NCBI RefSeq assembly: GCF_018977255.1
Contig: NW_024704812.1
Coordinates: 186,001-250,000, forward strand
Source of the DNA: Callorhinchus milii
Taxonomy: Eukaryota
DNA length: 64,000 bases
Direction of reading: 5' to 3'
The notes below the pieces were generated by a model. The model saw nothing but the letters and a program-made list of their open reading frames with translations, searched no databases and was not told the DNA's origin. Position 1 is the stretch's first letter. Every line of letters begins with the position of its first letter. A program made the translations under genes and the position numbers. This document shows, piece by piece, positions 4,096-56,055 of the stretch.

Positions 4096-4128
<33 letters not shown>

Positions 4129-4298: not shown

Positions 4299-4354
<56 letters not shown>

Positions 4355-13300: not shown

Positions 13301-14124
13301 CTGTAGTTATTGTTCGAGCACTCGTCTCGCAAGTGAGCAGACCCAGATTTGATCCCCGGGCGGAAGGGCGAAACGTTGGGCAGTTTCCTTACTTCACACA
13401 CACGCCTCTGTTTTTCTCGCAGTAAGTCGGAACCCGGTTGTTAACCGATTAGAGACTTTTTCGGGATAACAATTCCTTCAAAAAAGTAATAAATTGATGA
13501 CTCAAACCATGACTGTTTTTTGGCACTGCAGTGCACACTGTATAAATGGAATGATTATTAATATTATATTAATAGTTCTTGCATTTGATATAGTGCCTTA
13601 TCACGTCTTTGAGACGTCTGAACGCGCTTCATGGGCTGTACTGTAAAGTGAATTATTGTATATTTTGTGGGTGAACCCTTTCAGCCAATTGTACACAATA
13701 GCGACCCACACAGAGCCGTGGATTGAGTGACCAATTTTTTTATTTTGAAGGAATTATTATCCCCAGAGAAGCGATCCGCCAACCGACCAACAAGTGGTTC
13801 CCACTTATTGTTCGGTAAATAGAGGCGCGTGTGTGTGGAGTAAGGAAACTTACCCAACCTCTCGCCCTGTGCCGCCCGGGAATCAAACCCAGGACTCTCA
13901 CTTGCGAGGCGAGTGCTCCAACCACTGAGCTACAGGACTCCACAATTCAGAACAATTCTGTGGAAAAACGACCTCAGTGAGAGAGTGGGAAACAGGATCC
14001 CAAAGGAGACAGACGGCAGAAGCAGAAAATGTTATTTATTTCAAGATCAAATTGGATAGATTTCTGCAAGAAAATAATATCTCAGGATACAGTGTATAGA
14101 CACACATACACAGACACACAGTCG

Positions 14125-14160
<36 letters not shown>

Positions 14161-18149: not shown

Positions 18150-18212
18150 CTACTTCCTGGTGCCATTACGACGTAAATTGTGATAAATATCTTTTTGGTG
18201 CTTTCCAAGGTC
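18150..18212 (-). CDS. Gene B last exon [20 protein letters not shown]-stop
   Basis: 63 nt including TAG. Confidence 0.8.
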   Translation of the reverse strand, partial: DLGKHQKDIYHNLRRNGTRK

Positions 18213-21200: not shown

Positions 21201-21266
21201 GTTCCTACCTACTGCTGATAAACAGAGTGCACATCTGTGTGTGTATGTGTGTCTATGTGTGTCTGC

Positions 21267-21298
<32 letters not shown>

Positions 21299-30272: not shown

Positions 30273-30593
30273 AGCAGGTGGGAGCTTTCAGTCTGACGTC
30301 ACTGAGAGTCACATAGAAGCCACAGCCGGACAATCTGTGTACTTCCTGGTAATGCCCAGTACAGGGAAGTTTTACTATAACATGGACAGTCAACACCAGC
30401 TCCACAATCGCATCAGCACAGGGAACAGCAGTGAAGTACTTTGGAGACTACCAGGGTCGGGCTGAGCTTTTACCCCAACAATGCCACTCTACGTCTGGAC
30501 ACAGTGACTCGGCTGATTCCGGTTCGTACTCAGTGATTGTGTTTGAATTAAGCCACGGAACAGCCACAGCAGCTTTACAACTGCGTGTTCACA
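30273..30593 (+). CDS. Gene C IgV exon, several indels
   Basis: homologous to other V exons; e.g. CTGACGTC versus CTGACCGTC, extra T in GAGCTTTTACC. Confidence 0.7.
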
Positions 30594-33500
30594 GTGAGTA
30601 AACAACAACAACTTGCATTTACACCACATCCCTCACGTGGGGTAGCGTCCGGGAGCGCTTAACAGGGGCAGAATCTGACCCCGAGCCGGTGGGAGAGGGA
30701 GGGGGGAGGTGACGGTAAACACAATCAAAAAGGAAGGTCATTAAATAGAATTTGGAGGTGGGAACGAGAGGGTGAGACGGGGATTGCGGGAGAGAGTGAC
30801 AGAGTTTTGGGGCGTAGCACCTGAAGGTCCATCTACCAATGGAGGGCGAGGTTGATGGGGGTACGGAATTTAGTGCTTGTGATCGGAAGCCCTGGAGTCC
30901 TGTAGGGTATTAGTTAGAGCAGGAAGGTCAACTGGCGGCCCGTGGGCCACATCCGGCCCCCCGGACCGATTTCATTTCATTCATTCAGCTCATTGTGGTC
31001 CAAGAGGCGGTACGTGGGCTGTCAGCTGCCCGTTGGTGATTTTGTGCGGCTGGCGGCCATTTGCAATGTTCCAACTTCCTCTCCCCCACCCCTCCCTCCC
31101 TCCCTGGTGAATGTCCTCACAGGGCAGTGGCAGGAGCCGGCGTTTGGGAGAATCCAGCGAGCAGAGCCCTTACTGCAGTCTGTCAGGAAGGCAAATGAGT
31201 CTCTTACCAACTGTGTCCTTGGGCTCCTACCACTGCTGATTGGGAGAGAGTGATTGGGAGAGAGAGAGGGAGAGAGAGAGAGAGGGAGGAGAGAGGGAGG
31301 CATGAAAGATAAGGGGGAGAGAGGGGAAGGGAGAGGGGAGAGAGGAAGGGAGAGAAGGGGAGAGAAGGGGGAAAGAGTGGGAAAGAGAGGGCAAGGTCGG
31401 AAGAGTGAGAGGGGAGAGAGGAATGAGAGAGTGGGGTTGGGGAGTGGGTGGTGGGGAGAGAGGAGAGAGAGAGGAGCAGAGACACACTTGCTCTGCCTTC
31501 CTGATAGACTGCAGTAAAGGGCCCATTTCATCTCATTCATTAAGCCAATAAACCTGGACTGTGAGCTCCCAGAGTGTGACTTTAAACCATAAATTGTGCT
31601 ACCAAATGAGCCAGACTGAGACCTGAATAAACAGTGAATCATAACAAACAGCGTCAGAAATAAAGTGTAGGGTTCAGCAAAGTGACTCTGAACAGTCTGT
31701 GTCAGTGAAGTGAATTGAACAAGTTTCTGAATGAAATGAAATGCGTTATCTTACAGCTCCGGTGTCCAATGTGAGCATCAGTCTGAGTCCAGACAAGGAG
31801 ATATTTATCGAGAAAAGATACAGCGACACTAAGATGTACAGCGATGGGATCGTTCCCCACCTATTCCTGGGCACTGGATGGAAACCCGTTACCTCTAACC
31901 CCACGTTACACACTGTCTGCAGATAATAGCACTCTGACAATCAGCCCCGTACACAGGAGCGACAGTGGAGGGTTTATCTGCACGGCCAGTCACCTGGTGG
32001 GCAGTGACAGCAGTAAACCAGTGAAGCTGGTGATAACTTGTGAGTATATTTGCTGTTGTGTTAAAACCAGATCAACGTGAGCTGAACAGGACAGTGCAGT
32101 TGGCCCACGTATATCCCTACTTGTTCCAGCCTGGCTCAGCTCTCTATAAGTCAGAAGGTTGTGGCCTCACGTAGTACTTGGAACTCATGTAGTCCAGACT
32201 GAAGCGCCAATGCAATGCTGGAATATTCTACATTGGGGTTTGATGCTGTGAATAGAGAAACAAACAGTGGGGTCCTGCAGTGGTTGGAGCCCTCACCTCG
32301 CAAGTGAGAGGACTTTGGTTTGATTCTCACCAATCGACTAATAACCGGGTTCCTAATTACTGCTCAGTAAACAGACGGTGTGTTTGGGAGTAGGGAAACT
32401 TGGCCGACGTTTTGCTCTATCAATAATATAATAATCCTTGCATTTGATACAGCGCTTTTCACATCTTCTGGACGACTGAAACGCTTCACAGAATATACTG
32501 TAAAGTGAATTGACTGTATATGTTATGAGCAAAACGCAGCAGCCAATTGCACACAGCAGCGAACCACAAACAGTCAGAGGTCTGTGATACATGTAAAAAG
32601 ACTGTTTCTCTCACACTATCATCTGCCATCCATTTATCTATCTATGTCATAGTTTAATGCTTTTTCTTTCAGATGGCCCTGATCCACTCACCTTTATTGT
32701 GAGTGGGCAGGTGATATGTGACAGTTTGGTCCCAGGACAGTACTGTGGGAAGGAGGAAGATTTGATGACCCTCAACTGTCAGACAAAATGTTTCCCAGAG
32801 TGTAACTACAGGTGGAACATAACACCACAGTCATTGCCGGCAACACCTCACAGCTGCCTATAGAGAGCCTCACGTTCAACAACAGCGGGGATTACACTTG
32901 CAATGTGAAGAATGATTACACCACGATTAGCCGCACGGAGAAGGTTTCAATCCTCGTGTACAGTGAGTTAGTTATCTCAGTCAAAAATGTCATGGTGTAA
33001 ACAACAACAGTGGCTTTCATATCAGGACGACGTCCCAAGGCACTGGATAGTCAGGGATCCGCACTCGAGTGGGGGTTGGGATAAGGAGGGGTGGAGGGCG
33101 GGTAGGGTTGGAATAGAAGGATGACTGGAGGCATGGCCGGTCGAAGAGGAAGGCCTTGAAATGGGTCTTTAAGGTGGCCTGGACTTGGGTATAGAGAGCA
33201 CAATTGCCAAGTTTGGAGCCTGGGCAGGACTGGGATGATGGGGTACAGAGTTTAGTGTGTGATCAGGAGCCACACACATGATACTAAGCTAAGAAAAGTA
33301 GTAAACAGTGAGGAGGAGAGTAACAGACTGCAAGAGGACATAGACAGACTGGTAACATGGGCAGACATGATGAAGTTTAATGTGGAGAAGTGCAAAGTGA
33401 TGTATTTTGGGACGATATACTGTAAAGTGAATTGCCGGTCTATTTTGTGGGCGAAACTCTGCAGCCAATTGCACACAGCAGTGTCCCACAAACAGTCGTG

Positions 33501-36500
33501 GATTGGGGCAGAGAGGCTGAAGGCCCAACCGCTGATGGTGGGGCAGATGGGCGGGGGGCATGAAGCAGGCCGGAGCCCGCTGAGCAGAGGGAGCGGAGGT
33601 AAGGAGAGAGGAGTGAGGTTGTAGAGGACATTCAAGGTGAGGACCAGGATCTTGAACTGAAGCAGAACAGCTTTGTGTTAAGTAAAGTAAATCCGGATGA
33701 AATGAAACACTTTATCTTACAGCTCTGCTGTCCAATGTGAGCATCAGCCTGAGTCCAGACAAGGAGATATTTATCGAGAATAAAGACACAACGACATTGA
33801 GGTGTACAACGATGGGATTGTTCCCCACCTATTCCTGGGCACTGGGTGGACACCCGTTACCTGTAACCCCACGTTACACACTGTCTGCAGCTAATAGCAC
33901 TCTGACAATCAGCCCCGTACACAGGAACGACAGTGGAGGGTTTATCTGCACGGCCAGTAACCCGGTGAACAGTGACAGCAGCAAACCAGTGAAGCTGGTG
34001 ATAACTTGTGAGTATATTTGCTGTGGTGTTAAAACCAGATCAACGTGAGCTGAACAGGACAGTGCAGTTGGCCCACGTATATCCCTACTTGTTCCAGCCT
34101 GGCTCAGCTCTCTATAAGGCAGAAGGTTGTGGGTTCAAGCCTCACGTCAGCACTTGGAACTCATATAGTCCTTCCTCCACTCATAGAAACACACATAGAC
34201 ATGGCTCTGCTGACCTGCAGTAAGTGGGAACCTACTTGTCAGTTGATTGCCGGATCGCTTTCTGGAGGTAATAACCACTCCATAAAATGTCAACCAATTG
34301 CACACAGCAGTGTCCCACAAACAGTTGGGGATTCAGGGACCAATTCATGAATATTATTTTTTGAAGGAATTTTTACCCTCGGAAAAGCGATCCATCAGTC
34401 GACTAACAACTGGGTCCCCACACACTGCGAGGTAAACAGAGGCGTACGGAGTAAGGAAACTTGCCCAATGTTTTGCCCTATAAATAATATAATAAACCTT
34501 TCATTTGATGCCGCGCTCTTTACATCTTTGAGACATCTCAAAATGCTTCACAGAATATATTGTAAAGTGAATTGACTGTATATTTGTGGGTGAAACACAA
34601 TTGCACACAGCGTCGTCCCAAAACAGCCGTGGATTGAAGTGACCAATTTACTATTAGTTTCTTTCTGGAGGGTTATTATCAGGCGTGTGGAGTAAGGAAA
34701 CTTGCCCAAGCATTCGCACCCTGATGGGAATTGAACTCAAGTTCACTTACGAGGCAAATGCTCTAACCACTGAGCAACAGGACTCCACTATTGTTATTAT
34801 CATTAAAGAGCCGCTGTTTGGATGAGACGTTAAACTATCTGCCTGTTCAGGTTAAAGATCCCATCACTATCTGAGTGTCAATCGGCCACTTGACTGTAGA
34901 GGGCCCCACAGACAAACCTAATCTCCCCACCAGACTGCAACACACACACCTGAGCCCGAGAGGGAGTTTAGGGACCAGGAGCAGGAACCCCGACTCGCTT
35001 TAAACTCCATGACCCAAAGTCAGCCTCACGTGACCTGAGCTGCAATAACAGTAAAGATAATAACAATAATAATGATCATAGTCATGATCATCAGAATAAT
35101 AATCATTCTTGCACTTGATATATCGCCTTATCAAGCGAGAGGACCTGGGTTTGATTCCCGCGCAGGTCAGGACGAAAGCTTAGGCAGGTACATTACTCCA
35201 CCCAACACTCACCGCCACCCCCACCCCCCCACACACATACACCCCACTGTTTAGCAGCGCCAATGTCTTGGGACGTCCTCCCGACGTTAAGGACGCTCTA
35301 TAAATGTAATATTATTGTTGTTGTATTTTGTTGTTTACCTAACAGTAAGTGGAAACCCTTGTTAGTCGATTGCCGGATCACTTTTCCGAATGTATTAACC
35401 CCTCCAAAAAAAACACCTCCTCACGTCTCAAATCACTTCACAGAATATACTGTAAAGTGAATTGACTGTATATTTTATGGGTGAAACACAACAACAACAA
35501 CAGGATTACATTTGTATAGCGTCTTTCACATCGGGAGGATGTCCCAAGGCACTGGACAGTGACAGCATTTCAGACCCGAGCTGGAGTCAGGGGGGGAGAA
35601 GGGAGGGGCGGGGAAGGGGGATGGCCGATGGCATGGTCGAAGAGGAGGGTCTTGAGGCGTGACTTGAAGGAGGCTAAGGAGGGCGTGAAGCGGAATGACT
35701 GGGGGATAGGATTACAGAGGTTGGGGGCAGAGTGGCTGAAGGCTCTCCCGCCAATGGTGGGGTGGGTGGGTCGGGGGACGGCAGCCAATTGCGCACAGGA
35801 GGGACCCACAAACAGTCGGAGGTCTGTGATACATGTAAAAAGGCTGTTTCTCTCACACTATCATCTGCCACCCATTTATCTATCTATGTCATCACTTAAT
35901 GTTTTTCTTTCAGATGGCCCTGATCCACCCACAGTATATATGAGTGGGCAAGTGATATGTGACAGTTTGGTCCCAGGACAGTACTGTGGGAAGGAGGGAG
36001 ATTTAGTGACGCTCAACTGTCAGACGAAATGTTTCCCAGAGTGTAACTACAGGTGGACACATAACACCACAGTCATTGCCGGCAACACCTCACAGCTGCC
36101 TATAGAGAGCCTCACGTTCAACAACAGCGGGGATTACACTTGCAATGTGAAGAATGATTACACCACGATTAGCCACACGGAGAAGGTTTCAATCCTCGTG
36201 TACAGTGAGTTAGATCTCAGTCAAAATTGGCACTGTGTAAACAATACATGGCATTTACACAGTGGCTTTCACATCAGGAGGATGTCTCAAGGCGCTGGAC
36301 AGTCAGGGACCCACATCTGAGCTGGGGGTTGCTATCAGGAGGGTTGGAGGGCAGGGAGATGGGTGTAGGAGGGTGACCGAAGGCACGGTCTGTCGAAGAG
36401 GAGGATCTTGAGATAGGTTTTGAAGGAGGTGAGGGAGGCGTGGCAGAGGGATTGTGGGAGTTTCAGAGGGTGGGGGCAGAGAGGCTTAAGGGGATGGGCG

Positions 36501-39500
36501 GGCGGGGAACATGGAGCAGGCCGGAGCCCGCTAAGCAGAGGGAGCGGACCGGTTGGTCAGGGATTAGGAGGTCACAGAGGTAGGGAGGGAGGAGTGAGGC
36601 CATGGAGGGCTTTAAAGCTGAGCACCAGGATCTTGAACTGTATCCTCTGAGGGATGGGGAGCCAGTGGAGCCGGGCGAGGGTGGGGACAACTCAAGGTGG
36701 AGCCAATAACTGGACTGTTTGTCTTTGCCTTGTTCAAGGGGCTCCCACACAGCAGATCACATGCGGAGCAGCAGATAAAGGAACAGCATTGGTGTTGATG
36801 TGCTCCTGGGCTGGTGGGGTGCCAGACACTGTCCTTCAGCTGAAGGTCGGACAGACGATTGTCAATGCGACAAACGAGGGGAATGTCACCATCACAAAGG
36901 ATCAGCTCAGCTCCCGAGAGATCTTCACATGTGTTGGACGCCATGTTGTCTCTGACAGTCAATGCTCTATAGTTATTGGTGAGGACTTGAGGGCTGAACA
37001 ACAACAACGATGACAAATTACACTTGTATAGCGCCTTTCACGTCGCAAAGACTTTCCAGGACGCTGCACAGTCAGGGTTTTTGGACCTGAGCTGGGAGTT
37101 GGGGTCAGGAGGGGTGGAGGACAGGGGGGGTGGTGGTGGTTGGGGGTGGGAGGGTGGCTGAATGTGCGGTTGGTCGAAGAGGAAGGTCTTTAGATGGGAT
37201 TTAAGATGTCTCGATGGCGTGATAAGGCGCTGTATCAAACGGGAGGATTATTATTATTCCTACTGACTGTTGGGGTGACTGTGTTGCTGTTTTGCTGAAC
37301 ACTGTCTGTGCTGTTACACAGATAAACCCCAGAGAGCGTCAGGGTCTGAGCCTCAGGTGGAAGTGGGGAAGGAGGCAGATGTGACCTTAGACGTGTCACT
37401 GACAGACACAGTGCGGGTGTCAGACCCTGGCCTGCTGCCCGCACACTTTACATGGTCGAAGGAAGACAACTCCATCACTGGCTCTGACGGCAAGTTCAAC
37501 ATCACCTCAGGACCAACCTTCTCTAAACTGCTCATCAGTAAATTCCAGGCAACCGATCAGGGCACATATCAATGCCATGTCACTAACGCAATGGGAGAGA
37601 ACTTCTTCCAATTTGACGTGACTTTGAAAGGCGGAGGTAAGTTATGATATGTTGACACACACACACACACACACACACTTACACAGTCACAGACACACAC
37701 AAACTCACAGACAGACATACACACCCCACCGCAGACACACACCCACAGACACACACACATACAGACACACACACACAGACACACATAGACACACATACAC
37801 ACACAGACGCGTACCTCTGTTTATCAGCAGTAGGTAGGAACCCGCTGTTAGTCAATTGACGGTTCACTTTCCGGAGGTCATCATAATCCTCCAAAAGAAC
37901 AAAAATCTGGTCAATCAATCCACGACTGTTTGTGGGACACTGCTGTGTGCAATTGGCTGCCGTGTTCCACCCACAAATACACAGTTACTACACTTTACAA
38001 CGACGTGATAAGGCACTGTATCAAATGCGAGGATTGATATGATTTACATGAGGTCTGTGCTGTGGTCTCTGTGTTACGAGAGTATAATCTAATAGAGAGA
38101 CAGTGAAGGTGTTTCTCTCCGCAGTGAATGTGGCCCTGATAGTGGGGACAATAGTGGGGGCTGTGGCTGTGGTGGTCATTGCAACACTCGCTGTGGTGTA
38201 CGTTTACAGGAAACGTAAGGAAGGTGAGGCCGTATATACACAGGAAAACCTTTCACCTTCATGTTCTGTTGTTTATATACCAGTCCAGACCCCCCTCAGC
38301 CACTCACCCTCTCACTGTCCTCTCTCTCTGTCAGTCTCTACCCCTCCGTCTCTCTCTATCTGTCTCTAGCCCCTCCGTCTCACTCTCTTTCACTATCAGT
38401 CTCTCCCACTTTGTCTCTCTCTCTCTATCAGCCTCTCCCCCTCCATTTCACCCTCTCTTTTCTATCAGTCTCTCCCCTTCTCTCTATCACCCTCCATCAC
38501 TCTCAGTCTCTCCCTCTCCATTTCACCCACTCTTTTCTATCAGTTTCTACCCCTCTCTCTCTATCAACCTCCATCTCACTCTCTGTCAGTCTCTATCCAT
38601 CCATCTCCCCCTCTCGCTATCAATCACTCCTCCTTTGTCTTTCTCTCTTTCTGTCAGGCTCTACCCCTATCTCTCTCTCTGTCAGTCCCTCCCTCTCCGT
38701 TTCTCTCCAGGTTCACCGGTTCAGCACCAAACTCTTGTTTATTTTCAAGATTTTCTACGATTTCAAGATACTCTCACCCGTTTTCAAACCCTTTCATGCC
38801 CTGGCACCTCCCTACCTCTCTGACCTGCTCACCCCCACCCCACACCGGCCTCCTATTTGTCCCTCGTTCCCTCCATCCCACCATCAGAGGCTGTGCCTTT
38901 GAATAAACAAGTTGTTGTTTATTTTCCAGCCAAAACACAGCAAGAGACAGAGGGTGAACCATACTACGAGACCATTGATGTCAGAGTAAGTCCTGTGCAG
39001 TCCTGTAGCTCAGTGGTTAGAGTCCTCGCCTCTCAAGCGAGAGGATCCGGTTTTGTTTCCCGGACAGGGCAAAACCTTAGGCAATTGGCTCCCCTTTGAT
39101 ACGACTCAAAGACGTGATAAGGCACTGTATCAAATGCAACAATTATTATTATGAAACCACACAGTCACTACTCTTTACCGTGTATCCTGTGAAGCGCTTT
39201 GAGATGTTATGAAGACGTGATAAGGCACTGTATGAAATGCAATGGTTATTATTATTTACTGCTAACGACATTGCTAATGAATAGCTAAACTGTGTTTGGT
39301 TATATTTTAGGCTTCCTCTGCCAATGTCTCCCAGAAGGATTCAGGCCCTTACATGGTGAGGAAACAAATGGCTGACACGGACAGTGTGTCAGCCCGGCTC
39401 AGTCTCTTGCTGTCCCAACTCTGTCCTTTACGACCCTAAACTGTCCTTCATCCCCTCATCCATGCCATGACCTGATATGCCTTCCCCACCTCCGCCATAT

Positions 39501-40093
39501 TGCCCGGCTCCGCCACTGTCTCTCACCGCAGGCCACCGAGGCCCTCATCCATGTGTTCACCACAAACAGGCTTGACTTTGCCCCTCCCTGCTTGTCGGCC
39601 TCCCCAACGCCTCCCTGTGCAAACTGCAGATCATCCAGAACTAACTCTGCAGCTCCCCATACCCCCTAACAACCTGTCCGCTCTCTCTGCTCAGCGGGCT
39701 CCGGCCTGCTTCACATCCCCCGCCTCACCTGCCCCACCATCGGTTGGGCCTTCAGTTACTCTGCCCCACCCTCTGGAACTCCATCCCACAGTCCCTCCAT
39801 CCCACCCCATCACTCCCTCACCTCCTTCAAGGCCTGTCACAAGACTTTCCTTCAACCTGGTCACCTTCCTAACCCCTACCTCGCCACCATCCACCCCGTC
39901 CTGATCCCAACCCACAGCTCAGATCCAAATCCCTGACTGTCCAGGTCCTTGGGACGTCCTCCTGATGTGAAAGGTTCAGTGTAAAATGTTGTTGTTAGTA
40001 ATGGTCTGTCCGATCTGCATTGTGTTTCAGGACCTTGGAAAGCACCAAAAAGATATTTATCACAATTTACGTCGTAATGGCACCAGGAAGTAG
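30273..40093 (+). CDS. Gene C: paralog with V-A*-B-A-B-C-D-TM-ITAM; leader exon not in the assembly; frameshifts in its first three exons (errors or pseudogene)
   Basis: 11 exons located; the last eight are open and in phase. Confidence 0.75.
31757..32039 (+). CDS. Gene C hybrid A1/A2 exon, 2-nt deletion
   Basis: 283 nt versus 285. Confidence 0.75.
32673..32962 (+). CDS. Gene C first B-type exon, 1-nt deletion
   Basis: 290 nt; TGGAACAT versus TGGACACAT. Confidence 0.75.
33723..34007 (+). CDS. Gene C second A-type Ig exon
   Basis: 285 nt open. Confidence 0.9.
35914..36204 (+). CDS. Gene C second B-type Ig exon
   Basis: 291 nt open; [15 protein letters not shown]. Confidence 0.9.
36739..36978 (+). 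CDS. Gene C VSIG10-like Ig exon
   Basis: 240 nt open; [20 protein letters not shown]. Confidence 0.9.
37322..37636 (+). CDS. Gene C membrane-proximal Ig exon
   Basis: 315 nt open. Confidence 0.9.
38125..38223 (+). CDS. Gene C transmembrane exon
   Basis: 99 nt. Confidence 0.9.
38930..38985 (+). CDS. Gene C cytoplasmic exon 1 ([10 protein letters not shown])
   Basis: 56 nt. Confidence 0.8.
39311..39355 (+). CDS. Gene C cytoplasmic exon 2 (..DSGPYM)
   Basis: 45 nt. Confidence 0.8.
40031..40093 (+). CDS. Gene C last exon (DL..IYHNL..stop)
   Basis: 63 nt including TAG. Confidence 0.8.
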   Translation, partial: DLGKHQKDIYHNLRRNGTRK

Positions 40094-43788: not shown

Positions 43789-43852
43789 ATGTGGTGGTTT
43801 CCAGCCGCGAGGATGTTGGTGGCTGCTCTGCTCATTCTGGTCACTAATCTGA
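43789..43852 (+). CDS. Gene D exon 1, signal peptide
   Basis: 64 nt, ATG TGG TGG TTT.., GTGAGT donor. Confidence 0.8.
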
Positions 43853-46800
43853 GTGAGTTACTGGTAACAACATAAGCAAAGGTCCATCTCGTTCATCCCC
43901 CACCATCGTGGCAGTCGCTACACATGTCGTGTCCCAAACTATATACTGTGTGTGTCTCCCACTGTGTGTGTATATATATATCTCTGTCTGGATGTGTGTG
44001 TCTGTCTCACAGTATGTGTCTCTGTCTGTGTGTGTGTGTGTGATTATCTGGGGGGTGTCTGTCTCTCGGTATGTTTCTCTATCTATCCGCGTGTATCTCT
44101 GTCTTTCTGTATGTGTCTCTCTGTGTGTCTCTGTGTATGTGTCGCTCTCTGTGTGTGTCTGTGTTTCTGTCTCTCAGTGTGTGTGTCTGTGTCTCTGTTT
44201 GTGAGTGTGTGTGTTCTCTCAGTTTGTGAGTGTGTGTGTGTCTCTGTGTCCGCGTGTGTATGAGTGTGTGTGTGTGTCTCTCTATATGCATTTGTGAGTG
44301 TCTATGTGTGTCTCTGTTTGTCTGTGTATCTCTCTGTTTGTGAGTGTCTGTTTGTGTATCTCTCTGTTTGTGAGTGTCTGTGTGTCGTTGTGTGTCTGTG
44401 TCTCCTTCTCTGTGTGTTTGTGGATGTGCCTGTGTGTGTCTCTCTATGTGTGTGAGTGTCTCTCTGTGTCTGTGAGTGTGTCTATCTATGAGATATCCTC
44501 CCGACGTGAAAGTCGCTACACAAATGGTACCTCTCTCTGCCTCTGTGTGTGTGTCTCTGTCTCGGTGTGTGTGTATGTGTCTGTCTCCTCTCTCTCTATG
44601 TCTTTCTGTGTGTATCTGTGGGTCTATCTACTGTATCCCAAGCTATTATTTTCTAGCAGAAATCTATCTAAATCTATCTTTCATCTTAAACAAATGACAT
44701 TTTCTGAATTGTGCAGTTCTGTAGTTCAGTGGTAAGAGCGCTCACCTTGTAAGTGAGAGATCTGGGTTCGCTTCCCCTCTGGGGGAAACGTTGGGCAAGT
44801 TTCCTTACTTCACACGTACCCACACGCCTCTGTTTACCAGAAGTAAGTAGAAACCTGGTTGTTAGTCGATTGACGGATTGCTTTTCTGGGGGTAATAATT
44901 CCTTCAAAACTTTTGTCCACAAATATAGTCAATTCACCTGACAGTAATTCTGTGAAGCGCTTTGAGACATCTCAAAGACGTGATAAGACGTTAGATCAAA
45001 TGCAAGGATGAATATTATTATTACATTGTGATATTTGGTGATTGACTGTTGTGTGTGTTTTGTATTACAGAGCAGGTGGGAGCTTTCAGTCTGACCGTCA
45101 CTGAGAGTCAGATAGAAGCCACAGCCGGACAATCTGTGTACTTCCTGGTAATGCCCAGTGAACAGGGAAGTTTTAGTATAACATGGAAAGTCAACACCAG
45201 CTCCACAATCGCAACAGCACAGGGAACAACAGTGAAGTACTATGGAGACTACCAGGGTCGGGCTGAGCTTTACCCCAACAATGCCACTCTACGTCTGGAC
45301 ACAGTGACTCCGGCTGATTCCGGTTCGTACTCAGTGTCTGTGTATGACTTAATCCTCGGAGCAGCCTCAGCAGATTTACAACTGCGTGTTCACAGTGAGT
45401 AAACAACAACAGCGCCCTTCACGCGGAGTGTCCCGGAGCACTTTGCAGGGGCCGAGTCTGACCCCGACCTGGGGGGGGAGAGGGAGAGGAAGGCGGTGAC
45501 TGTAAACACGATCAAACTGGAAGGTCTTTAGGTGCGATTTGAAGGTGGGGAGGGAGGGGCGAGGCGTCGGGTTTGAGGGAGAAAGTGACGCAGTGGCTGA
45601 AGACACAGCCATTGATGGTGGAGTGGAGGGGACGAGGGACAAACAAGACCAAGATGGAACCAGCCAAGAGGAGGCACCTGGAGGTGCAGTGGGTGGGTGA
45701 GCAGGTCGGAGAGTTAGGGCAGTACCATGGCATGAAGGGATTTGAAAACGAGTGAGATGATCTCAAAATCGATCTGTTTGGTGATACGGAAACAGTGGGG
45801 CCTGGCGAGGGCGGGGGTGATGGGGTACAGAGTTTAGTGTGTGATAGGGAGCCAGTGGGGCCTGGCGAGGGCGGGAGTTGATGGGGTACAGAGTTTAGTG
45901 TGTGATAGGGAGCCAGTGGGGCCTGGCGAGGGCGGGGGTGATGGGGTACAGAGTTTAGTGTGTGATAGGGAGCCAGTGGGGCCTGGCGAGGGCTGGGGTG
46001 ATGGGGTACAGAGTTTAGTGTGTGATAGGAAAGCCAGGCAAGTGCCAGTGGATCTTGGGAGCAAGAGAGGGGGGGGGGGGGGGCGGGAGAGAGAGAGAGG
46101 AGGGGAGAGGGAGGGGGAGAGTGAGCAGCAGCGACGTATTTGCTCTGCTCTCCTGACAGACTGCAGTAAAGGCTCTGGTCGCTGGGTCTCCCAACCATCA
46201 GCTCCTGCCGCTGACCAGGGAGGGAGGGAGGGAGTGGAAATGGCCTCAGGTTGGATGTGGCTCGTGGATCTTTGACAAACGGGAATCCGGCCCACGGCAG
46301 CCACCCTGCTTCAGAGCATCGGTGAGAGCAGGGTGGGCCAACTGGTGGCCCACGGGCCGCATCCGGCCCCCGGGCCCATTTCATCTCATTCATTAAGCCA
46401 ATAAACCTGGACTGTGAGCTCCCAGAGTGTGGCTTTAAACCATAAAATTGTGCTACCAAATGAGCCAAACTGAGACCTGAATAAACAGTGAATCATAACA
46501 AACAGCGTCAGAAATAAAGTGTAGGGTTCAGCAAAGTGACTCCGAATAGGTTTGTGACAGTGAAGTGAATCTGAACAAGTTTCTCAATGAAATGAAACGC
46601 GTTATCTTACAGCTCTGCTGTCCAATGTGAGCATCAGCCTGAGTCCAGACAAGGAGATATTTATCGAGAATAAAGACACAGTGACACTAAGATGTACAGC
46701 GATGGGATTGTTCCCCACCTATTCCTGGGCACTGGATGGACACCCGTTACCTGTAACCCCACGTTACACACTGTCTGCAGCTAATAGCACTCTGACAATC

Positions 46801-49800
46801 AGCCCCGTACACAGGAGCGACAGTGGAGGGTTTATCTGCACGGCCAGTAACCTGGTGGGCAGTGACAGCAGCAAACCAGTGGCCCTAACCATACAAGGTG
46901 AGTTGGACCAATAGAAAAGTGCGCCCCTTTCTTGCGGAACCCACTATAATCAATAATGTACTTTCCGGCCCTCGGGCCTCGCTGACGTCACTGTGGGGCG
47001 CTCGGCTCCGGACACACAAGCGGCAAACGGACTTCACTAGGATTCACCGCTGTTGTGATTGTCTGTCTGTCTGTCTGTGTGTGTGTGAGTGTGAGTCTGT
47101 GTGTGTGAGTCTGTGTGTGTGAGAGAGGGTGTGGGTGTGTGAGAGAGGGTGTGTGAGAGGGAGTGTGTGTGTGAGTGTGTGTGAGAGTGCGTGTGTGACT
47201 CTCTGTTTGTGAGTGTCTCTTTGTGGATCTGTGTCTCTGATTGTGAGTGTCTGCGTGTCTCTCTCTCTCAGTTTGTGAGTGTGTTTGCATGCCTCTGTGT
47301 GCGTGTGTATGTGAGTGTGTGTATGTTTGTGAGTGTCTGTGTGTGTGTCTCTGTGTCTGTGTATCTCTCTGTGAGTGTCTGAGTATCTGTGTATCTCTCC
47401 GTGAGTGTCTGTGTGTTGTGTGTCTGTGTATCTCTCTGTTTGTGAGTGTCCATGTGTTTGTGTGTGTGTATGCCTGTTTGTGTGTGTCTGTGTGCCTCTG
47501 TGTGTCTGTGGATCCCTCTGTTTGTGAGTGTCTGTGTGTCTTTATGTGTCTGTGTATCTCTCTGTGAGTGTCTGTATGTGTCTCTGTATGTCTGTATTTC
47601 TGTTTATGAGTGTCTGTGTGTTTCAGTGTGTCAGTGTCTCTCTGTTTGTGAGTGTCTGCGTATCTCTGTTTGTGAGCGTCTGTGAGTCTTTGTGTGTCTG
47701 TGTCTCCGTCTCTGTGTGTTTGTGGGTGTGCCTCTGTGTGTCTCTCTATGTGTTTGTGAGTGTCTCTCTGTGTCTGTGAGTGCGTCTCTCTCTATGGGAC
47801 ATCCTCCCGACATGAAAGGCGCTATATAAATGTATGTATCTCTCTCTGTATCTGTGAGAGTGTGTGTCTCTGTGAGTCTGTGAGTGTGTGTGTGTCTCTC
47901 TCTGTGTTTGTGCATGTTTGTCTCTCTCTGTGAGTGTGTGAGTTTCCCTCTGGGTCTGTGTGTATGTCTCTGTGTTTCTGAGTGTGTGTTTCTCTCTCCC
48001 CCAAACGCCCCCAAAAAAGCCACCCAGTCCTTGTTAAAGAAGCAATTATATTTTCCCCAACAATGTAATATGTCCTATTTCCTCATGTCTCGTTTATATC
48101 AATAAAGTGAATACACGTTCATCAATATCCCCGTTCAACTCCCCGCCATTTTCTGCAAAATTTGTCAAAAATGCCCACAATTTTTACAAATATTTCTGCA
48201 CTTTTCTTGGCCCAGAGTGTTGAGCGCATAACTACCGGTATAACGATGCTGCTAACTACAGAACTGCATACTATGTACAGAGACCTGTAGCTCAGGGGTT
48301 AGAGCACTGGCCTCGCAAGTGAGGGGGTTTGATTCCCGGTGGGTCAGGGCGAAACATAGGGCAATTTTCCTTACTCCACACCCACGCCCCTCTGTTCATC
48401 AGCAGTAAGTACCCAGTTGTTAGTTGATTGGTGGATCACTTTTCCGGAGGTAATAATTCCCGTCAAAATACATAAAACAATAATAATAATTTGGTCACTC
48501 AATCCATGACTGTTTGTGGGGATGTCGCTGAGCTCAATTGGCTGCCGTGTTCCGCCCACAAAATACTGTCACTGCACTTTACAGCATATCCTGTGAAGCG
48601 TTTTGAGACGCCTCGAAGACGTGATGAGGTTATATCAAATGCAAGATTTATTATTATAACAACAACAGCTTACATTGATATAGCCCCCCTCACGCAGGAT
48701 AGCGTCCCAGAGCACTTGATGTCTGAATTAAGGGTGAATAATAATAACACTAACAGTGTCGGAAATGCAGTGCAGTGTTAGTAAAGTGAATCAGAACAGC
48801 TTTGTGTTAAGCTTTGTGTCTGAATGAAACGAAACGCTTTATCTTACAGCCTTGGTGTCCAATGTGAGCATCAGCCTGAGTCCAGACGGGGAGATGATGA
48901 TAGAGAATAAGGACACAGTGACACTGAGATGTACATCGATGGGATCGTTCCCCACCTATTCCTGGGCACTGGCTGGACACCCGTTACCTGTAACCCCACG
49001 TTACACACTGTCTGCAGATAATAGCACTCTGACAATCAGCCCCGTACACAGGAGCGACAGTGGAGGGTTTATCTGCACGGCCAGTAACCTGGTGAGCAGT
49101 GACAGCAGCAAACCAGTGAAGCTGGTGATAACTTGTGAGTATATTTGCTGTGGTGTTAAAACCAGATCAACGTGAGCTGAACAGGACAGTGCAGTTGGCC
49201 CACGTGTATCCCTACTTGTTCCAGTCTGGCTCAGCTCTCTATAAGTCAGAAGGTTGTGGCCTCACCTCAGTACTTGGAACTCATGTAGTCCAGACTGAAG
49301 CTCCAATGCAATGCTGGAATATTCTACATTGGGGTTTGATGCTGTGAATAGAGGAACAAACAGTGGGGTCCTGTAGTGGTTGGAGCCCTCACCTCGCAAG
49401 TGAGAGGACTTTGGTTTGATTCCCACCAATTGACTAATAACCGGGTTCCTAATTACTGCTCAGTAAACAGAGGGTGTGTTTGGGAGTAGGGAAACTTGGC
49501 CGACATTTTGCTCTATCAATAATATAATAATCCTTGCATTTGATACAGCGCTTTTCACGTCTTCTGGACGACTGAAACGCTTCACAGAATATACTGTAAA
49601 GTGAATTGACTGTATATTTGTGGGTGAAACGTGGCAGACAGTTGCGCACAGCGACATCCCCACAAACAGCCATAGATTGAAGTAACCAATTTATTATTGT
49701 TTTTTTTTTCTTGAGGGATTATTATCAGGCGTGTGGAGTAAGGAAAGTTGCCCAAGCATTCCCCCACCTGCTGGGAATCGAACCCAAGACTCTCACTTGC

Positions 49801-52800
49801 TCGAAACACTGAGCTACAGGACTCCACTATTGTTATTATCATTGGAAGAGCCGTTGTTTGGATGAGACGTTAAACTATCTGTCTGTTCAGGTTAAAGATC
49901 TCATCACCATTTGAGTATCAATCGGCCACTTGACTGTAGAGGGCCCCACAGACAAACCTAATCTCCTCACTAGACTGCAACACACACACCTGAGCCCGAG
50001 AGGGAGGTTAGGGACCAGGAGCAGGAACCCCGACTCACTTTAAACTCCTTGACCCAAAGTCAGCCTCACGTGACCTGAACTGCAATAATAGTAATGATAA
50101 TCACAATAATAATGATCATAGTCATGATCATCAGAATAATAATCATTCTAGCACTTGATATATCGCCTTATCAAGCGAGAGGACCTGGGTTTGATTCTTG
50201 GGCGGGTCAGGACGACACCTAACGCAACTTTCCTTACTCCACCCACACACCCCCACATTCACCCCCACACACACTATTGTTTGCCTAACAGTAAGCGGGA
50301 ACCCTTGTTAGTCGATTGCCGGATCACTTTTCCAGAGGTATTAACACATCCAAAAAACGTGCCTTACCTCGTCTCAAATCGCTTCACAGAATATATTGTA
50401 AAGTGAATTCACTGTATATTTTATGTGTGAAACGCGCAGCCAATTGCGCTCAGGAGGGACCCACAAAAGGCCAGAACAACAGCAACAACATCAACAAAAT
50501 TACATTTATAGAGCGCCTTTCACGTCAGGAAAACGTTCCAAAGTGCTGAACAGTCAGGTGTCGGGGCCCGAGCATGTGGGAGGGGTGGGGGAGGGGTGAG
50601 GGAAGGCAGAGAGGTGGGAGGGAGACCAAAAGCTCGATAAAGAAAAGGGTTTTGAGACCGGACTTGAAGGAGGCCAAGGAGGAAGCGAGGCCAAGGGACC
50701 GTGGGATGGAGTTCCAGAGTGTGGGGGCAGAGAAGCTGAAAGCCCGGCCAGCGATGGGCCGGGTAGGAGACATGGAGCAGCCGGAGCACACTGAACGGAG
50801 GACGCGGGCAGGTTGGTAGGGAGTCAGCAGGTCAGAGAGATAGGAGGGGGCAAGGCCATGGATGGCCTTAAAGGTGAGGACAAGCATCTGGTATTCCATC
50901 CTCTGAGGGATGGGGAGCCAGTGGAGTCGGCGAGGGTGGGAGTGATGGGGTCACGGAGCCGGGTGCACGAGAGTACACGAGCTGCAGAGTTTTGGATGAT
51001 CTGCAGTTTCTGAAGGGAAGAGTTGGGAAGGCCGATGAGGAGGGAGTTCACGTAATCAAACCTTGAGGTGATGAATGCGTGGGTGAAGGCTTCGGAAGCC
51101 TGATGGCTGAGACAGTGGCGGAGTCTGGCAATATTGCGGAGGTGGCGGAGTCTGGCAATATTGCGGAGGTGGCGGTAGGCAGTGCTGTCATGGCGCGGAT
51201 GTGGGGGAGAAAGGACAGTTCAGGGTCAAACAAGATTCCCAGGTTCCTGTGATACATGTAAAAAGGCTGTTTCTCTCACACTATCATCTGCCATCCATTT
51301 ATCTATCTATGTCATAGTTTAATGCTTTTTCTTTCAGATGGCCCTGATCCACCCACAGTTGAAGTGATCGGGCTGGAGCTATGTGACAGCTTCTTCCCAG
51401 GACAGTACTGTGGGAAGGAGGGAGATTTAGTGACACTCAACTGTCAGACGAAATGTTTCCCAGAGTGTAACTACACGTGGACACATAACACCGCGGTCAT
51501 TGCCGGCAACACCTCACAGCTGCCTATAGAGAGCCTCACGTTCCAAAGCAGCGGGGATTACACTTGCAATGTGGAGAGCGATTACACCACGATTAGCCGC
51601 ACGGAGAAGGTTTCAATCCTCGTGTACAGTGAGTTAGATCTCAGTCAAAGTTGGCACTGTCTAAATAACAACACATGGCATTTACACAGTGGCTTTCACG
51701 TCAGGAGGATGTCCCAAGGCGCTGGACAGTCAGGGACCCACACCTGAGCTGGGGGTTGCTATCAGGAGGGTTGGAGGGCAGGGAGATGGGTGTAGGAGGG
51801 TGACGAAGGCACAGTAGATCGCACAGGTTTGAAGAAGGCGAGGGAGAGGGCGAGGCGGAGCGGTTATGGGAGTTTCATAGGATGGGGCAAATTAGGGCAG
51901 AACGCCGATGATGGAGTGGGCCGGGAAGGGACATGGAGTAGGTTGGAGCCTAATGAGCGGAGGGAGTGGACAGCTTGGTCAGGGGTTAGGAGGTCACAGA
52001 GGAAGGGAGGGAGAAGTGAGGCCATTGAGGGCTTTGATAGTTGAGGATCAGGATCTTGAACAGTATCCTCTGAGGGATGGGGAGCCAGTGGAGCCGGGCG
52101 AGGGTGGGGACAACTCAAGGTGGAGCCAATAACTGGACTGTTTGTCTTTGCCTTGTTCAAGGGACTCCCACACAGCAGATCACATGCGGAGCAGCGGATA
52201 AAGGAACAGCAGTGGGGTTGATGTGCTCCTGGGCTGGTGGGGTGCCAGACACTGTCCTTCAGCTGAAGGTCGGACAGACGATTGTCAATGGGACAAACGA
52301 GGGGAATGTCACCATCACAAAGGATCAGCTCAGCTCCCGAGAGATCTTCACATGTGTTGGACGCCATGTTGTCTCTGACAGTCAATGCTCTATAGTCATT
52401 GGTGAGGACTTGAGGGCTGAACAGCAGCGACAATAACAAATTACACTTGTATAGCACTCTTCACGTCGCAAACACGTCCCGGGACGCTGCACAGTCTGGG
52501 TTTTTGGACCTGAGCTGGGAGTTGGGGTCAGGAGGGGTGGAGGGCAGGGGGTGGTGGTGGTTGGGGGTGGGAGGGTGGCTGAAGGTGCGGTTGGTCGAAG
52601 AGGAAGGTCTTTAGATGGGATTTAAGATGTCTCGATGGCGTGATAAGGCGCTGTATCAAACGGGAGGATTATTATTATTCCTACTGACTGTTGGGGTGAC
52701 TGTGTTGCTGTTTTGCTGAACGCCGTCTGTGCTGTTATACAGATAAACCCCAGAGAGCGTCAGGGTCTGAGCCTCAGGTGGAAGTGGGGAAGGAGGCAGA

Positions 52801-55800
52801 TGTGACCTTAGACGTGTCACTGACAGACACAGTGCGGGTGTCAGACCCTGGCCTGCTGCCCGCACACTTTACATGGTCGAAGGAAGACAACTCCATCACT
52901 GGCTCTGACGACAAGTTCAACATCACCTCAGGACTAACCTTCTCTAAACTGCTCATCAGTAAATTCCAGGCAACCGATCAGGGCACATATCAATGCCGTG
53001 TCACTAACGCAATGGGAGAGAACTCTTCCAATTTGACGTGACTTTGAAAGGCGGAGGTAAGTTATGATATGTTGACACACACACAGACACACACACAGAC
53101 ACACACACTTACACAGTCACAGACACACACAAACTCACAGACAGACATATACACCCCACCGCAGACAACACCCACAGACACACACACACACACACACACG
53201 CAGACACACATAGACACACATACACACACAGATGTGCACCTCTGTTTATCAGCAGTAGGTAGGAACCCGCTGTTAGTCAATTGACGGTTCACTTTCTGGG
53301 GTCATAATCCCTCCAAAAAAAAACAAAGAATCTGGTCAATCAATCCACGACTGTTTGTGGGTCACCGCTGTGCGCAATTGGCTGCTGTGTTCCGCCGACA
53401 AAATACAGTTACGACACTTTACAACGACGTGATAAGGCGCTGTATCAAATGCGAGGATTGATATGATGTTCATGAGGTCTGTGCTGTGGTCTCTATGTTA
53501 CGAGAGTATAATCTAATAGAGAGACAGTGAAGGTGTTTCTCTCCGCAGTGAATGTGGCCCTGATAGTGGGGACAATAGTGGGGGCTGTGGCTGTGGTGGT
53601 CATTGCAACACTCGCTGTGGTGTACGTTTACAGGAAACGTAAGGAAGGTGAGGCCGTATATACACAGGAAAACCTTTCACCTTCATGTTCTGTAGTTTAT
53701 ATACCAGCCCAGACCCCCCTCAGCCACTCACCCTCTCACTGCCCTCTCTCTCTGCCAGTCTCTACCCCTCCGTCTCTCTCTATCTGTCTCTAGCCCCTCC
53801 GTCTCACTCTCCCTCACTATCAGTCTCTCCCCCTTCATCTCTCTCTATCAGTCTCTCCCCCTCCATCTCTCTCTGTCAGTCTCTACCCCTCCGTCTCTCT
53901 CTATAATAATAATAATAATAATCCTTGCATTTGATATAGCGCTTTTCATGTCGGGAGGACGTCCCAAAGCGCTTCACAGAACACACTGTAAAGTGAATTG
54001 ATTGTATATTTGTGGGCGAACGCGGCAGCCAATTGCGCACAGCAATGTCCCACAAACAGTCGTAGATTGGAAATGACCAATTTTTTATTATTGTTTATTT
54101 TTGGGGGGGGGGATTATTATTAGGCGTGTGGAGTAAGGAAACTTGCCCAAGGTTTCGCCCTGACTGGAATTGAACTCAGGTCTCTCGCTTGTAAAGTGAG
54201 TGCTCTAACCACTGAGCTACAGGACTCCACTCTATCTGTCTCTACCCACTCCGTCTCACTCTCTCTCACTCCCAGTCTCTCCCCTTTCATGTCTCTCTAT
54301 CAGTCTCTTCCCTTCTGTCTCACACTCCCTCTATTAGTCTCTATCCACCTCCGTCACAAACTCAATCAGTCTCTACCCTCTCCGTCTCACTCTTCCTCCA
54401 TCAGTCTCTCCCCCTCTATCTCTCTCTCTCTCTCTATCAGTCTCTCCCGCTCCATTTCACCATCTCCTTTCTATCAGCCTCTATCCCCCCTCTCTATCAC
54501 CCTCCATCTCACTCTCTATCAGTCTCTATCCATCCATCTCCACCTCTCTCTTTCAATCGCTCCCTCTTTGTCTTTCTGTCAGGCTTTAACCCTATCTCTC
54601 ACTACCAATCTCTCTCTCTCTCTCTGTCTCTCTATCAGTGCCTCCTCTCCGTTTCTCCCCAAGTTCACCGGTTCAGCAAATGTACAAACTCTTGTATATT
54701 TTCAAGATTTTCTACGATTTCAAGATCCTCTCACTCGTTTTGAAACCCCTTCATGCCCTGGCACCTCCCTACCTCTCTGACCTGCTCACCCCCCACCGCC
54801 CCCACACCGGCCTCCTATTTGTCCCTCGTTCCCTCCATCCCACCATCAGAGGCTGTGCCTTTGAATAAACAAGTTGTTGTTTATTTTCCAGCCAAAACAC
54901 AGCAAGAGACAGAGGGTGAACCACACTACGAGACCATTGATGTCAGAGTAAGTCCTGTGCAGTCCTGTAGCTCAGTGGTTAGAGTCCTCGCCTCTCAAGC
55001 GAGAGGATCCGGTTTTGTTTCCCGGACAGGGCAAAACCTTAGGCAATTGGCTCCCCTTTGATACGACTCAAAGACGTGATAAGGCACTGTATCAAATGCA
55101 ACGATTATTATTGTTATGAAACCACACAGTCACTACTCTTTACCGTGTATCCTGTGAAGCGCTTTGAGATGTTACGAAGACGTGATAAGGCACTGTATGA
55201 AATGCAATGGTTATTATTATTTATTGCTAACGACATTGCTAATGAGTAGCTAAACTGTGTTTGGTTATATTTTAGGCTTCCTCTGCCAATGTCTCCCAGA
55301 AGGATTCAGGCCCTTACATGGTGAGGAAACAAATGGCTGACACGGACAGTGTGTCAGCCCGGCTCAGTCTCTTGCTGTCCCACCTCTGTCCTTTACGACC
55401 CTAAACTGTCCTTCATCCCCTCATCCATACCATGACCTGCTATGCCTTCCCCACCTCCGCCATATTGCCCGGCTCCGCCACTGTCTCTCACCGCAGACCA
55501 ACGAGAACCTCATCCATGTGTTCACCACAAACAGGCTTGACTTTGCCCACTCCCTGCTTGTCGGCCTTCCCAACGTCTCCCTCTACAAACTGCAGATCAT
55601 CCAGAACTAACTCTGCAGCTCCCCATACCCCCTAACAACCTGTCCGCTCTCTCTGCTCAGCGGGCTCCGGCCTGCTTCACATCCCCCGCCTCACCTGCCC
55701 CACCATCGGTTGGGCCTTCAGTTACTCTGCCCCACCCTCTGGAACTCCATCCCACAGTCCCTCCATCCCACCCCATCACTCCCTCACCTCCTTCAAGGCC

Positions 55801-56055
55801 TGTCACAAGACTTTCCTCTCAACCTGGTCACCTTCCTAACCCTACTCGCCACCATCCACCCCGTCCTGATCCCAACCCACAGCTCAGATCCAAATCCCTG
55901 ACTGTCCAGGTCCTTGGGACGTCCTCCTGATGTGAAAGGTTCAGTGTAAAATGTTGTTAGTAATGGTCTGTCCGATCTGCATTGTGTTTCAGGACCTTGG
56001 AAAGCACCAAAAAGATATTTATCACAATTTACGTCGTAATGGCACCAGGAAGTAG
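43789..56055 (+). CDS. Gene D: 11-exon paralog (L-V-A1-A2-B-C-D-TM-ITAM); 1-nt deletion at the end of exon 7
   Basis: all 11 exons with canonical boundaries; ~688 aa if the indel at ~53023 is corrected. Confidence 0.85.
45071..45394 (+). CDS. Gene D IgV exon
   Basis: 324 nt open, Cys-free. Confidence 0.9.
46613..46897 (+). CDS. Gene D A1 Ig exon
   Basis: 285 nt open, ends KPVALTIQ. Confidence 0.9.
47055..47990. repeat. GT/CT-rich compound microsatellite (similar tracts 10340-10800, 29430-30098, 43940-44600, 62945-63840)
   Basis: degenerate (GT)n and GTGTCTCT units. Confidence 0.9.
48850..49134 (+). CDS. Gene D A2 Ig exon
   Basis: 285 nt open. Confidence 0.9.
51338..51628 (+). CDS. Gene D B-type Ig exon
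   Basis: 291 nt; translation identical to gene A exon 5. Confidence 0.9.
52162..52401 (+). CDS. Gene D VSIG10-like Ig exon
   Basis: 240 nt open. Confidence 0.9.
52743..53056 (+). CDS. Gene D membrane-proximal Ig exon, 1-nt deletion giving TGA at 53039-53041
   Basis: 314 nt versus 315. Confidence 0.8.
53549..53647 (+). CDS. Gene D transmembrane exon
   Basis: 99 nt. Confidence 0.9.
53905..54229 (-). mobile_element. Full-length tRNA-derived SINE with (ATT)n tail and 6-bp TSD; gene D only
   Basis: GGAGTCCTGTAGCTCAGTGG A-box head, GAGTTCAATTCC B-box, CTCTAT duplicated at 53899-53904 and 54230-54235. Confidence 0.9.
54892..54947 (+). CDS. Gene D cytoplasmic exon 1 ([10 protein letters not shown])
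   Basis: 56 nt. Confidence 0.8.
55276..55320 (+). CDS. Gene D cytoplasmic exon 2 (..DSGPYM)
   Basis: 45 nt. Confidence 0.8.
55993..56055 (+). CDS. Gene D last exon (DL..IYHNL..stop)
   Basis: 63 nt including TAG. Confidence 0.8.
   Translation, partial: DLGKHQKDIYHNLRRNGTRK

Follow-up and report, generated by a model that had tools for sequence, protein, structure and literature searches.

The window examined in this study is a stretch of 64,000 nucleotides from the elephant shark Callorhinchus milii (contig NW_024704812.1, positions 186,001 to 250,000), which carries four full units of a receptor gene and the start of a fifth, here called genes A through E. Receptor copies are the sole content of the window, as they are of a locus on another scaffold (MU249885.1, locus L001, assembly GCA_018977255.1), where at least three more copies reside. 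Neither stretch includes a marker gene of the conserved CEACAM locus, such as ATP1A3, LIPE, CNFN or PAFAH1B3. This receptor cluster has expanded recently. We focus on gene D, which was modeled on the genomic window from stop-to-stop open reading frames (ORFs) and splice sites, and which comprises a leader plus 10 exons encoding, in order, an N domain, five immunoglobulin (Ig) domains, a transmembrane (TM) segment and three parts of a cytoplasmic tail (exons cy1, cy2 and cy3; Table 1). [quoted passage not shown]

The spliced tail of gene D and its family

Exon cy2 is bounded by canonical splice sites, with ...tatattttag immediately upstream and gtgagg immediately downstream, and the acceptor that precedes cy3 (...cattgtgtttcag) is canonical as well. 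The reading frame remains open from the TM exon through cy1, cy2 and cy3 to the stop codon, with no break. A first-pass annotation of this DNA had proposed that an ITAM is divided here by a phase-0 intron after Y-x, and our reconstruction bears this out at exact coordinates. The joined exons encode D-xxx-YxxL-x7-YxxL (DSGPYM/..., where the slash marks the exon junction; core YMDL-x7-YHNL), and both junctions are in phase 0. The ITAM core pattern Yxx[L/I]-x6-8-Yxx[L/I], present in the predicted cytoplasmic tail, arises by chance in 0.12% of trials when the 54-residue tail is shuffled, and in 0.18% of random tails of the same length. The junction is already in the public annotation, because four NCBI models for C. 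milii (P0001-P0004) end with precisely this spliced tail, which varies among them at one position [H/Y]. The proposal that YHN, and in copy A also YMN, fit the pY-x-N preference of the Grb2 SH2 domain also stands as a motif match.

The TM helix of gene D has zero charged residues, and therefore there is no sign of pairing with an adaptor of the DAP12 or FcRgamma type. The ITAM lies 38 residues beyond the stop-transfer sequence (RKRK) of the TM segment. A third tyrosine resides in cy1, within the sequence P-[HY]-Y-E-T-I, and copies of this exon are located at 38930-38985, 19705-19760 and 3773-3828. A related transcript from a different sample (P0007; L002, SRR10305543) carries P-R-Y-E-T-[IF] twice together with an immunoreceptor tyrosine-based inhibitory motif (ITIM; SLYSKV), and the Cyt1 exons of Xenopus carry Y-D-R-I-I at a place similar to that of the shark cy1 tyrosine.

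The same exon junction is found in a ray. A CEACAM5/6-like gene of Mobula hypostoma (XP_062895373/4; L003, CAWUEV010000073.1) has a penultimate exon of 42 nucleotides, followed by a phase-0 intron of 1.8 kb that splits Y-M/E-L; P0036 is the longer isoform of the Mobula protein. The spliced junction reads ...STYM/ELNLGDRSVYSDL, the tail ends as ...QNYENF...ENSTYM/ELNLGDRSVYSDLKR followed by the stop codon, and the C-terminus of protein P0027 is ...QNYENFPRNEQGASHNAQDENSTYMELNLGDRSVYSDLKR. The two species differ in other respects: their ectodomains are only ~28% identical, four exons, rather than three, follow the TM exon in Mobula, and an upstream exon of the Mobula tail carries Y-E-N in place of the Y-E-T-I of C. 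milii. The presence of the Y-x/x-L junction in Mobula indicates that it is conserved from holocephalan to batoid, in addition to frogs and mammals.

Assignment of gene D to a CEACAM-like family is supported by several features of its sequence. The best match of the N-A1 domain pair among sequences of the Protein Data Bank (PDB) is human CEA (1e07, E=2.3e-43, query residues 7-200 aligned to chain residues 2-198), followed by CEACAM1 and CEACAM6. The gene has an N domain followed by IgC2-like domains, and the similarity of the N-A1 region is highest to CEACAMs. The N exons of genes A, B, D and E translate without cysteine, in keeping with the CEACAM N domain, in which the canonical intradomain disulfide is missing. 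The shark N domain aligns with that of human CEA and CEACAM1, and the gene also has the CEACAM exon layout, in which the leader is split in phase 1 and each Ig domain occupies one phase 1-1 exon. Every Ig piece of gene D matches Pfam Ig families. The nearest proteins are NCBI models for C. milii with 93-94% identity, whose names (CEACAM5-like, CEACAM1-like, VSIG10-like and titin-like) vary, and a profile search recovers CEACAM-like proteins in sharks, a ray and teleosts, the nearest annotated ones being named CEACAM1/5-like.

Receptor copies and the surrounding sequence

The coordinates of the receptor units, of the exons of gene D and of the ITAM exon pairs are collected in Table 1.

Table 1. 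Receptor genes, exons of gene D and ITAM exon pairs. Coordinates are positions in the window, except for the Mobula pair, which is given in positions of locus L003.
Feature	Coordinates	Strand	Remarks
Gene A	14487..1465	-	
Gene B	29000..18150	-	
Gene C	30273..40093	+	
Gene D	43789..56055	+	
Gene E (start)	from 59725	+	
Gene D leader exon	43789..43852	+	21 residues + 1 base; phase 1 donor a/gtgagt; located by tblastn with the P0002 leader
Gene D N-domain exon	45071..45394	+	IgV-like, without Cys, phase 1-1; Pfam V-set/I-set
Gene D Ig exon 2	46613..46897	+	A-type IgC2-like, phase 1-1
Gene D Ig exon 3	48850..49134	+	A-type IgC2-like, duplicate of Ig exon 2, phase 1-1
Gene D Ig exon 4	51338..51628	+	phase 1-1
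Gene D Ig exon 5	52162..52401	+	short Ig-like, phase 1-1
Gene D Ig exon 6	52743..53056	+	314 nt, frameshifted; phase 1-1
Gene D TM exon	53549..53647	+	32 residues, phase 1-1
Gene D cytoplasmic exon 1 (cy1)	54892..54947	+	19 residues; phase 1 in, phase 0 out
Gene D cytoplasmic exon 2 (cy2)	55276..55320	+	45 nt, 15 residues; first ITAM half, ends after Y-x, phase 0
Gene D cy2-cy3 intron	55321..55992	+	phase 0, splits first YxxL; largely interspersed repeat
Gene D cytoplasmic exon 3 (cy3)	55993..56055	+	63 nt with TAG, 20 residues; second ITAM half, distal Y-H-N-L
Gene A ITAM exon pair	3402-3446 and 1465-1527	-	junction YM/NL
Gene B ITAM exon pair	18885-18929 and 18150-18212	-	
Gene C ITAM exon pair	39311-39355 and 40031-40093	+	
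Mobula ITAM exon pair	L003 14826-14867 and 16711-16758		genomic junction TACATG/gtatat ... ttaacag/GAACTT

The copies in the window differ in domain number, such that genes A and D have an N exon and five Ig exons, and genes B and C have an N exon and six. The latter two carry an extra A-type/B-type pair, for example at 26030-26320 and 24983-25267 in gene B. The cy2-cy3 intron measures 1874 nucleotides in gene A, 672 in genes B and D, and 675 in gene C.

A signal of constraint is evident in the 3′ exons of these genes. Over the 263 nucleotides of the TM, cy1, cy2 and cy3 exons, gene D differs from gene A at two positions and from genes B and C at one position each. The introns between the TM and tail exons have diverged by ~4% in the A-D and C-D comparisons, and by more between B and D. 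At 4% divergence, ~11 differences would be expected in 263 nucleotides (Poisson estimate P < 0.001). Pairwise comparison of the N exons (12904-13224(-), 28677-29000(-), 45071-45394(+) and 60793-61116(+)) yields ratios of nonsynonymous to synonymous change (dN/dS) of 1.3-5.8. The N-exon changes are concentrated in two stretches and the tail exons are almost invariant, and the N-exon pattern resembles the diversification described for CEACAM ligand-binding domains. A variable N exon joined to a constrained tail is the pattern expected of expressed receptors, in which the N domain would be driven by its ligand and the signaling tail would be conserved.

Repetitive DNA is abundant around these exons. 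The tail introns and 3′ flank of gene D are dense in interspersed repeats (54156-54225(-), 54962-55033(+), 55321-55992 and 56074-56448), including tRNA-like heads of short interspersed nuclear elements (ARAGORN: tRNA-Val, tRNA-Glu). A repeat element with pseudo-ORFs (...LYKLQIIQN and IDFKILSIIYKSLQALAPPYL) recurs at 40139, 18063 and 1378. Long GT/CT-rich simple arrays, which translate as CVCVSV... runs, occupy 43857-44700 in the leader-N intron and 47100-48000 between Ig exons 2 and 3.

Alternative readings and the proposed signaling role

Several observations weigh against the conclusion that gene D encodes an intact receptor with its own ITAM, and some of these concern the integrity of the reading frames. 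Ig exon 6 of gene D is 314 nucleotides long, compared to 315 nucleotides in genes A and C and in three L001 copies, and the loss of one base after about 53023 creates an in-frame stop at 53039, upstream of the TM exon. Gene A has a 1-nucleotide deletion in exon 5978-6216, gene B has indels in four exons (22786-23075, 22008-22249, 21343-21656 and 20817-20915), and gene C has indels in three (30273-30593, 31757-32039 and 32673-32962). A literal reading of the assembly leaves zero intact copies in the window. Sporadic indels of the same kind are likewise present at L001 (17643-17881, 19023-19120, 19826-19880 and 20923-20985), where one copy has them even in its TM and tail exons and the other copies are clean. 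In addition, a tblastn search of the window with the P0002 leader located leaders only at 14487-14416(-), 43789-43852(+) and 59725-59788(+), and found no leader exon for genes B and C in the assembled sequence. At least one public gene model for C. milii covers two gene units, and public models skip exons.

One reading of these defects is that gene D has become a pseudogene, as possibly have all the other window copies, in which case the split ITAM would be an untranslated relic of recent origin. We consider this quite unlikely. All of the lesions are single-base indels whose exon locations differ from copy to copy, none of the stops is due to a substitution, and every splice site is intact. 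Moreover, this pattern, together with the indels on MU249885.1, fits long-read consensus error in near-identical repeats, the tail exons are better conserved than their own introns, and dN/dS exceeds 1 for the N exons. The indels are probably consensus errors in an array of near-identical repeats. Genes B (-) and C (+) are arranged head to head, their N exons (span 28677-30593) being only ~1.2 kb and an assembly gap (30099-30128) apart, which reflects either a genuine inverted duplication or a fold-back in the assembly. Runs of N are present in the window at 17537-17666, 30099-30128, 40575-40725 and 56538-56667.

Other reservations apply to the tail itself. The first-pass annotation had described the junction as conserved in genes A-D. 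It is indeed found in all four, with the junction of B and C being the same as that of D and A alone differing, but these are recent duplicates, and their agreement does not amount to independent conservation. This agreement is weak evidence because the ITAM exon pairs are 98-100% identical, flanking intron bases included, and it reflects recent duplication or gene conversion. Database searches with the tail recover no relative beyond C. milii: a HMMER search with the TM segment and tail (87 residues) against 1.84 billion representatives returned only the C. milii protein itself and two matches to the TM segment only, and a word-based search with tail residues 535-593 of P0002 matched C. milii proteins alone. 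An in-frame alternative acceptor (aaaggttcag, at 55945) is present 48 nucleotides 5′ of cy3, and its use would add 16 residues and destroy the ITAM. If this acceptor were the authentic one, then the motif would have arisen by chance from an incorrect splice model. This possibility is highly improbable given the chance rate of about 0.1-0.2% for the motif, the stronger pyrimidine tract at 55993 than at 55945, the use of the same junction by public models (in which 55945 is unused), and the recurrence of the junction position and phase in Mobula and Xenopus.

The main functional rival accepts the gene model and differs in how the tail is used. The motif might work in the manner of CEACAM3, as an ITAM-like or endocytic motif that directly recruits Grb2, Vav, PI3K or adaptor complexes, rather than as a classical ITAM coupled to Syk. 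Gene D departs from the strict ITAM consensus D/E/N-x-x-Y, since the sequence K-D-S-G-P-Y places D at -4 and S at -3. The Mobula tail likewise has its acidic residue at -4, so that neither species conforms to strict D/E-x-x-Y. In eutherians, the CEACAM1-related tails that share this split lack the acidic residue and are assigned to the ITAM-like class (PMC2832619), and the distal tyrosine of the shark motif is in a Y-x-N context of the Grb2 type. However, both halves of the shark motif are YxxL and are separated by the canonical 7-residue spacer, unlike the eutherian YxxL-x7-YxxM/I, and the acidic residue is displaced by a single position. On balance, Syk-independent use of this kind seems unlikely to us.

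Under the preferred reading, in which gene D encodes a CEACAM-like receptor with its own ITAM core, the variable, cysteine-free N domain would bind a ligand and cause receptors to cluster. Src-family kinases would then phosphorylate the tyrosines of YMDL and YHNL, and with both phosphates in place the motif would be bound by Syk or ZAP-70 through their tandem SH2 domains, with no DAP12 or FcRgamma adaptor involved. The phosphorylated YHNL, and in copy A also the phosphorylated YMNL, could recruit Grb2, and the upstream Y-E-T-I might serve as a further docking or sorting site. We infer expression and a role as a paired receptor, and, from established ITAM biology, phosphorylation and the binding of Syk and Grb2.

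A candidate for the opposing partner is represented by the C. milii protein P0005, whose ectodomain is 88-89% identical to those of the ITAM-type genes. Its closest relatives (P0016 from Pristiophorus japonicus and P0017 from Mustelus asterias) share the ectodomain type, and all three proteins have long tails composed of repeated D-[LFM]-Y-A-[QKR]-V units. The Mustelus protein also carries canonical ITIMs (VEYAQI and VIYAQV). Genes of the P0005 type have the appearance of the inhibitory members in a set of paired receptors, and these paralogues may oppose the ITAM-bearing receptors, as in the paired CEACAM receptors of mammals and Xenopus. We also considered whether gene D itself might have an alternative 3′ end of the inhibitory kind, and rejected this because a search of the window for tail exons of the P0005 type matched the TM exon only.

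Comparison with known split-ITAM tails

The phase-0 split of the first YxxL, which the first-pass annotation likened to CEACAM3 and DAP12, is a published hallmark (PMC2832619, PMC5112662, PMC4536121). In mammalian CEACAM1-related genes, the first YxxL of ITAM-like tails is divided by a phase-0 intron (PMC2832619). The Ceacam tails of Xenopus have the same split of the first YxxL, with the layout (1)Cyt1(0)Cyt2(0)Cyt3 (Zimmermann & Kammerer 2016, PMC5112662), and an equivalent split has been described for classical ITAM signaling subunits, including DAP12 (Guselnikov et al. 2015, PMC4536121). Grb2-type YxN motifs have also been remarked upon for CEACAMs of Xenopus (PMC5112662) and marsupials (PMC2832619). 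For cartilaginous fish, a prototypic CEACAM architecture with an ITAM has been claimed ‘from cartilaginous fish to humans’ (Chang et al. 2013, PMC3628338), and both this claim and the work of Pavlopoulou & Scorilas 2014 (PMC4079198) rest on expressed sequence tags (ESTs) from little skate. In the literature that we searched, these ESTs are the sole cartilaginous-fish CEACAMs, and we found no paper describing the elephant-shark CEACAM cluster. Thus, CEACAM and other ITAM genes were already known to have this split layout, and the C. milii tail is annotated but undiscussed. The present findings are a modest extension of known biology and entail no new mechanism. They place the predicted self-signaling, two-exon CEACAM ITAM tail in holocephalans and rays, and next to this tail they reveal signs of a paired-receptor system, namely N domains that diversify and a sister gene whose tail bears tyrosine motifs of another type. 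This suggests that the activating/inhibitory arrangement of CEACAMs was already present in the ancestor of jawed vertebrates.

The first-pass annotation also hinted at a shared ancient ITAM exon module, which is a pre-existing and plausible idea that sequences this short cannot prove. When compared to the PDB sequence set, the shark tail had no significant match to any ITAM chain, and its match to SLC30A1 (E=1.3) is due to chance. The best match of the Mobula tail (motif YMELNLGDRSVYSDL) is to the first ITAM of CD3zeta (YNELNLGRREEYDVL; PDB 3ioz_B), with an E value of 0.76 that is not significant. Only tentatively do we raise the possibility that the chondrichthyan exon pair, consisting of a 42-45 nucleotide exon that ends in Y-x in phase 0 followed by a terminal exon x-L-x7-YxxL, represents one and the same ancestral two-exon cassette as that of CD3zeta, DAP12 and FcRgamma, and that it was shuffled between receptor and adaptor genes before the holocephalan-elasmobranch split. 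If this doubtful proposal were true, then the genes of shark and ray would represent the deepest branch among single-chain receptors with the cassette, and they could serve as a root for tracing how the ITAM was acquired and how paired CEACAMs, activating and inhibitory, evolved.

Among known systems, the ITAM/ITAM-like receptors of Xenopus Ceacam groups 1 and 2 (e.g. Ceacam304 and Ceacam351/368/369) share many features with the shark gene, including an N domain that is free of cysteine, IgC domains behind it, and a TM segment with three exons for the tail. The tail phases of gene D, (1)cy1(0)cy2(0)cy3, are those of the Xenopus ITAM tails, and both groups have the Y-x/x-L split, a 7-residue spacer, Y-x-N motifs and a tyrosine in the first cytoplasmic exon. 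Published tails (PMC5112662, Additional file 1) include ...GPYM/GLQ...YSELK followed by a stop codon, and ...SSYQ/ELQ...YNNL. In longer form, one tail reads ...AHPAKEEGPYM/GLQRPSQDTYSELKL to the stop codon, and a second reads ...ENMAGNNPQESSYQ/ELQFSNKDVYNNLRKTPR; Y-x-N Grb2 motifs are boxed in these tails. The flanks are similar as well (GPYM; KD[IV]Y.NLR[KR]; Xenopus ...SSYQ/ELQFSNKDVYNNLRK versus shark ...GPYM/), and in both animals there are paired members with other tails and fast-evolving N domains. In contrast, the shark tail has its acidic residue at -4 rather than -3, the membrane-proximal Ig domains of the shark receptors differ and are more numerous (5-6 after N), and identity between the tails outside the motif is low, at 2-5 of 21 positions. 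In intron-anchored alignments that exclude the four motif residues, the score of the shark tail against most Xenopus tails exceeds that of shuffled shark tails (p 0.001-0.07). Because these comparisons are non-independent, the modest similarity outside the motif is no more than suggestive.

Human CEACAM3 and the mammalian CEACAM1-related proteins resemble the shark gene product in being single-chain receptors with their own tyrosine motif (PMC2832619). The mammalian CEACAM1-related genes and the ITAM-bearing CEACAMs of opossum also share the interruption of YxxL by a phase-0 intron (Kammerer & Zimmermann 2010, PMC2832619), mammalian CEACAMs have inhibitory relatives with similar N domains, and marsupial forms also have Y-x-N. 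Nevertheless, mammalian tails are encoded by four exons versus three in the shark, the eutherian motif is YxxL-x7-YxxI/M without an acidic residue as opposed to the shark YxxL-x7-YxxL, and the ectodomain of CEACAM3 consists of the N domain alone, unlike that of the shark receptor. More distant counterparts are the ITAM signaling subunits DAP12/TYROBP, FcRgamma, the CD3 chains, CD3zeta and CD79 (PMC4536121), which have the 7-residue spacer in common with the shark, and gene D shows the exon split that characterizes their ITAMs in that study. As short adaptors, these subunits have an acidic residue in the TM segment and hardly any ectodomain, whereas the shark gene encodes a large receptor of the ligand-binding type with an uncharged TM segment.

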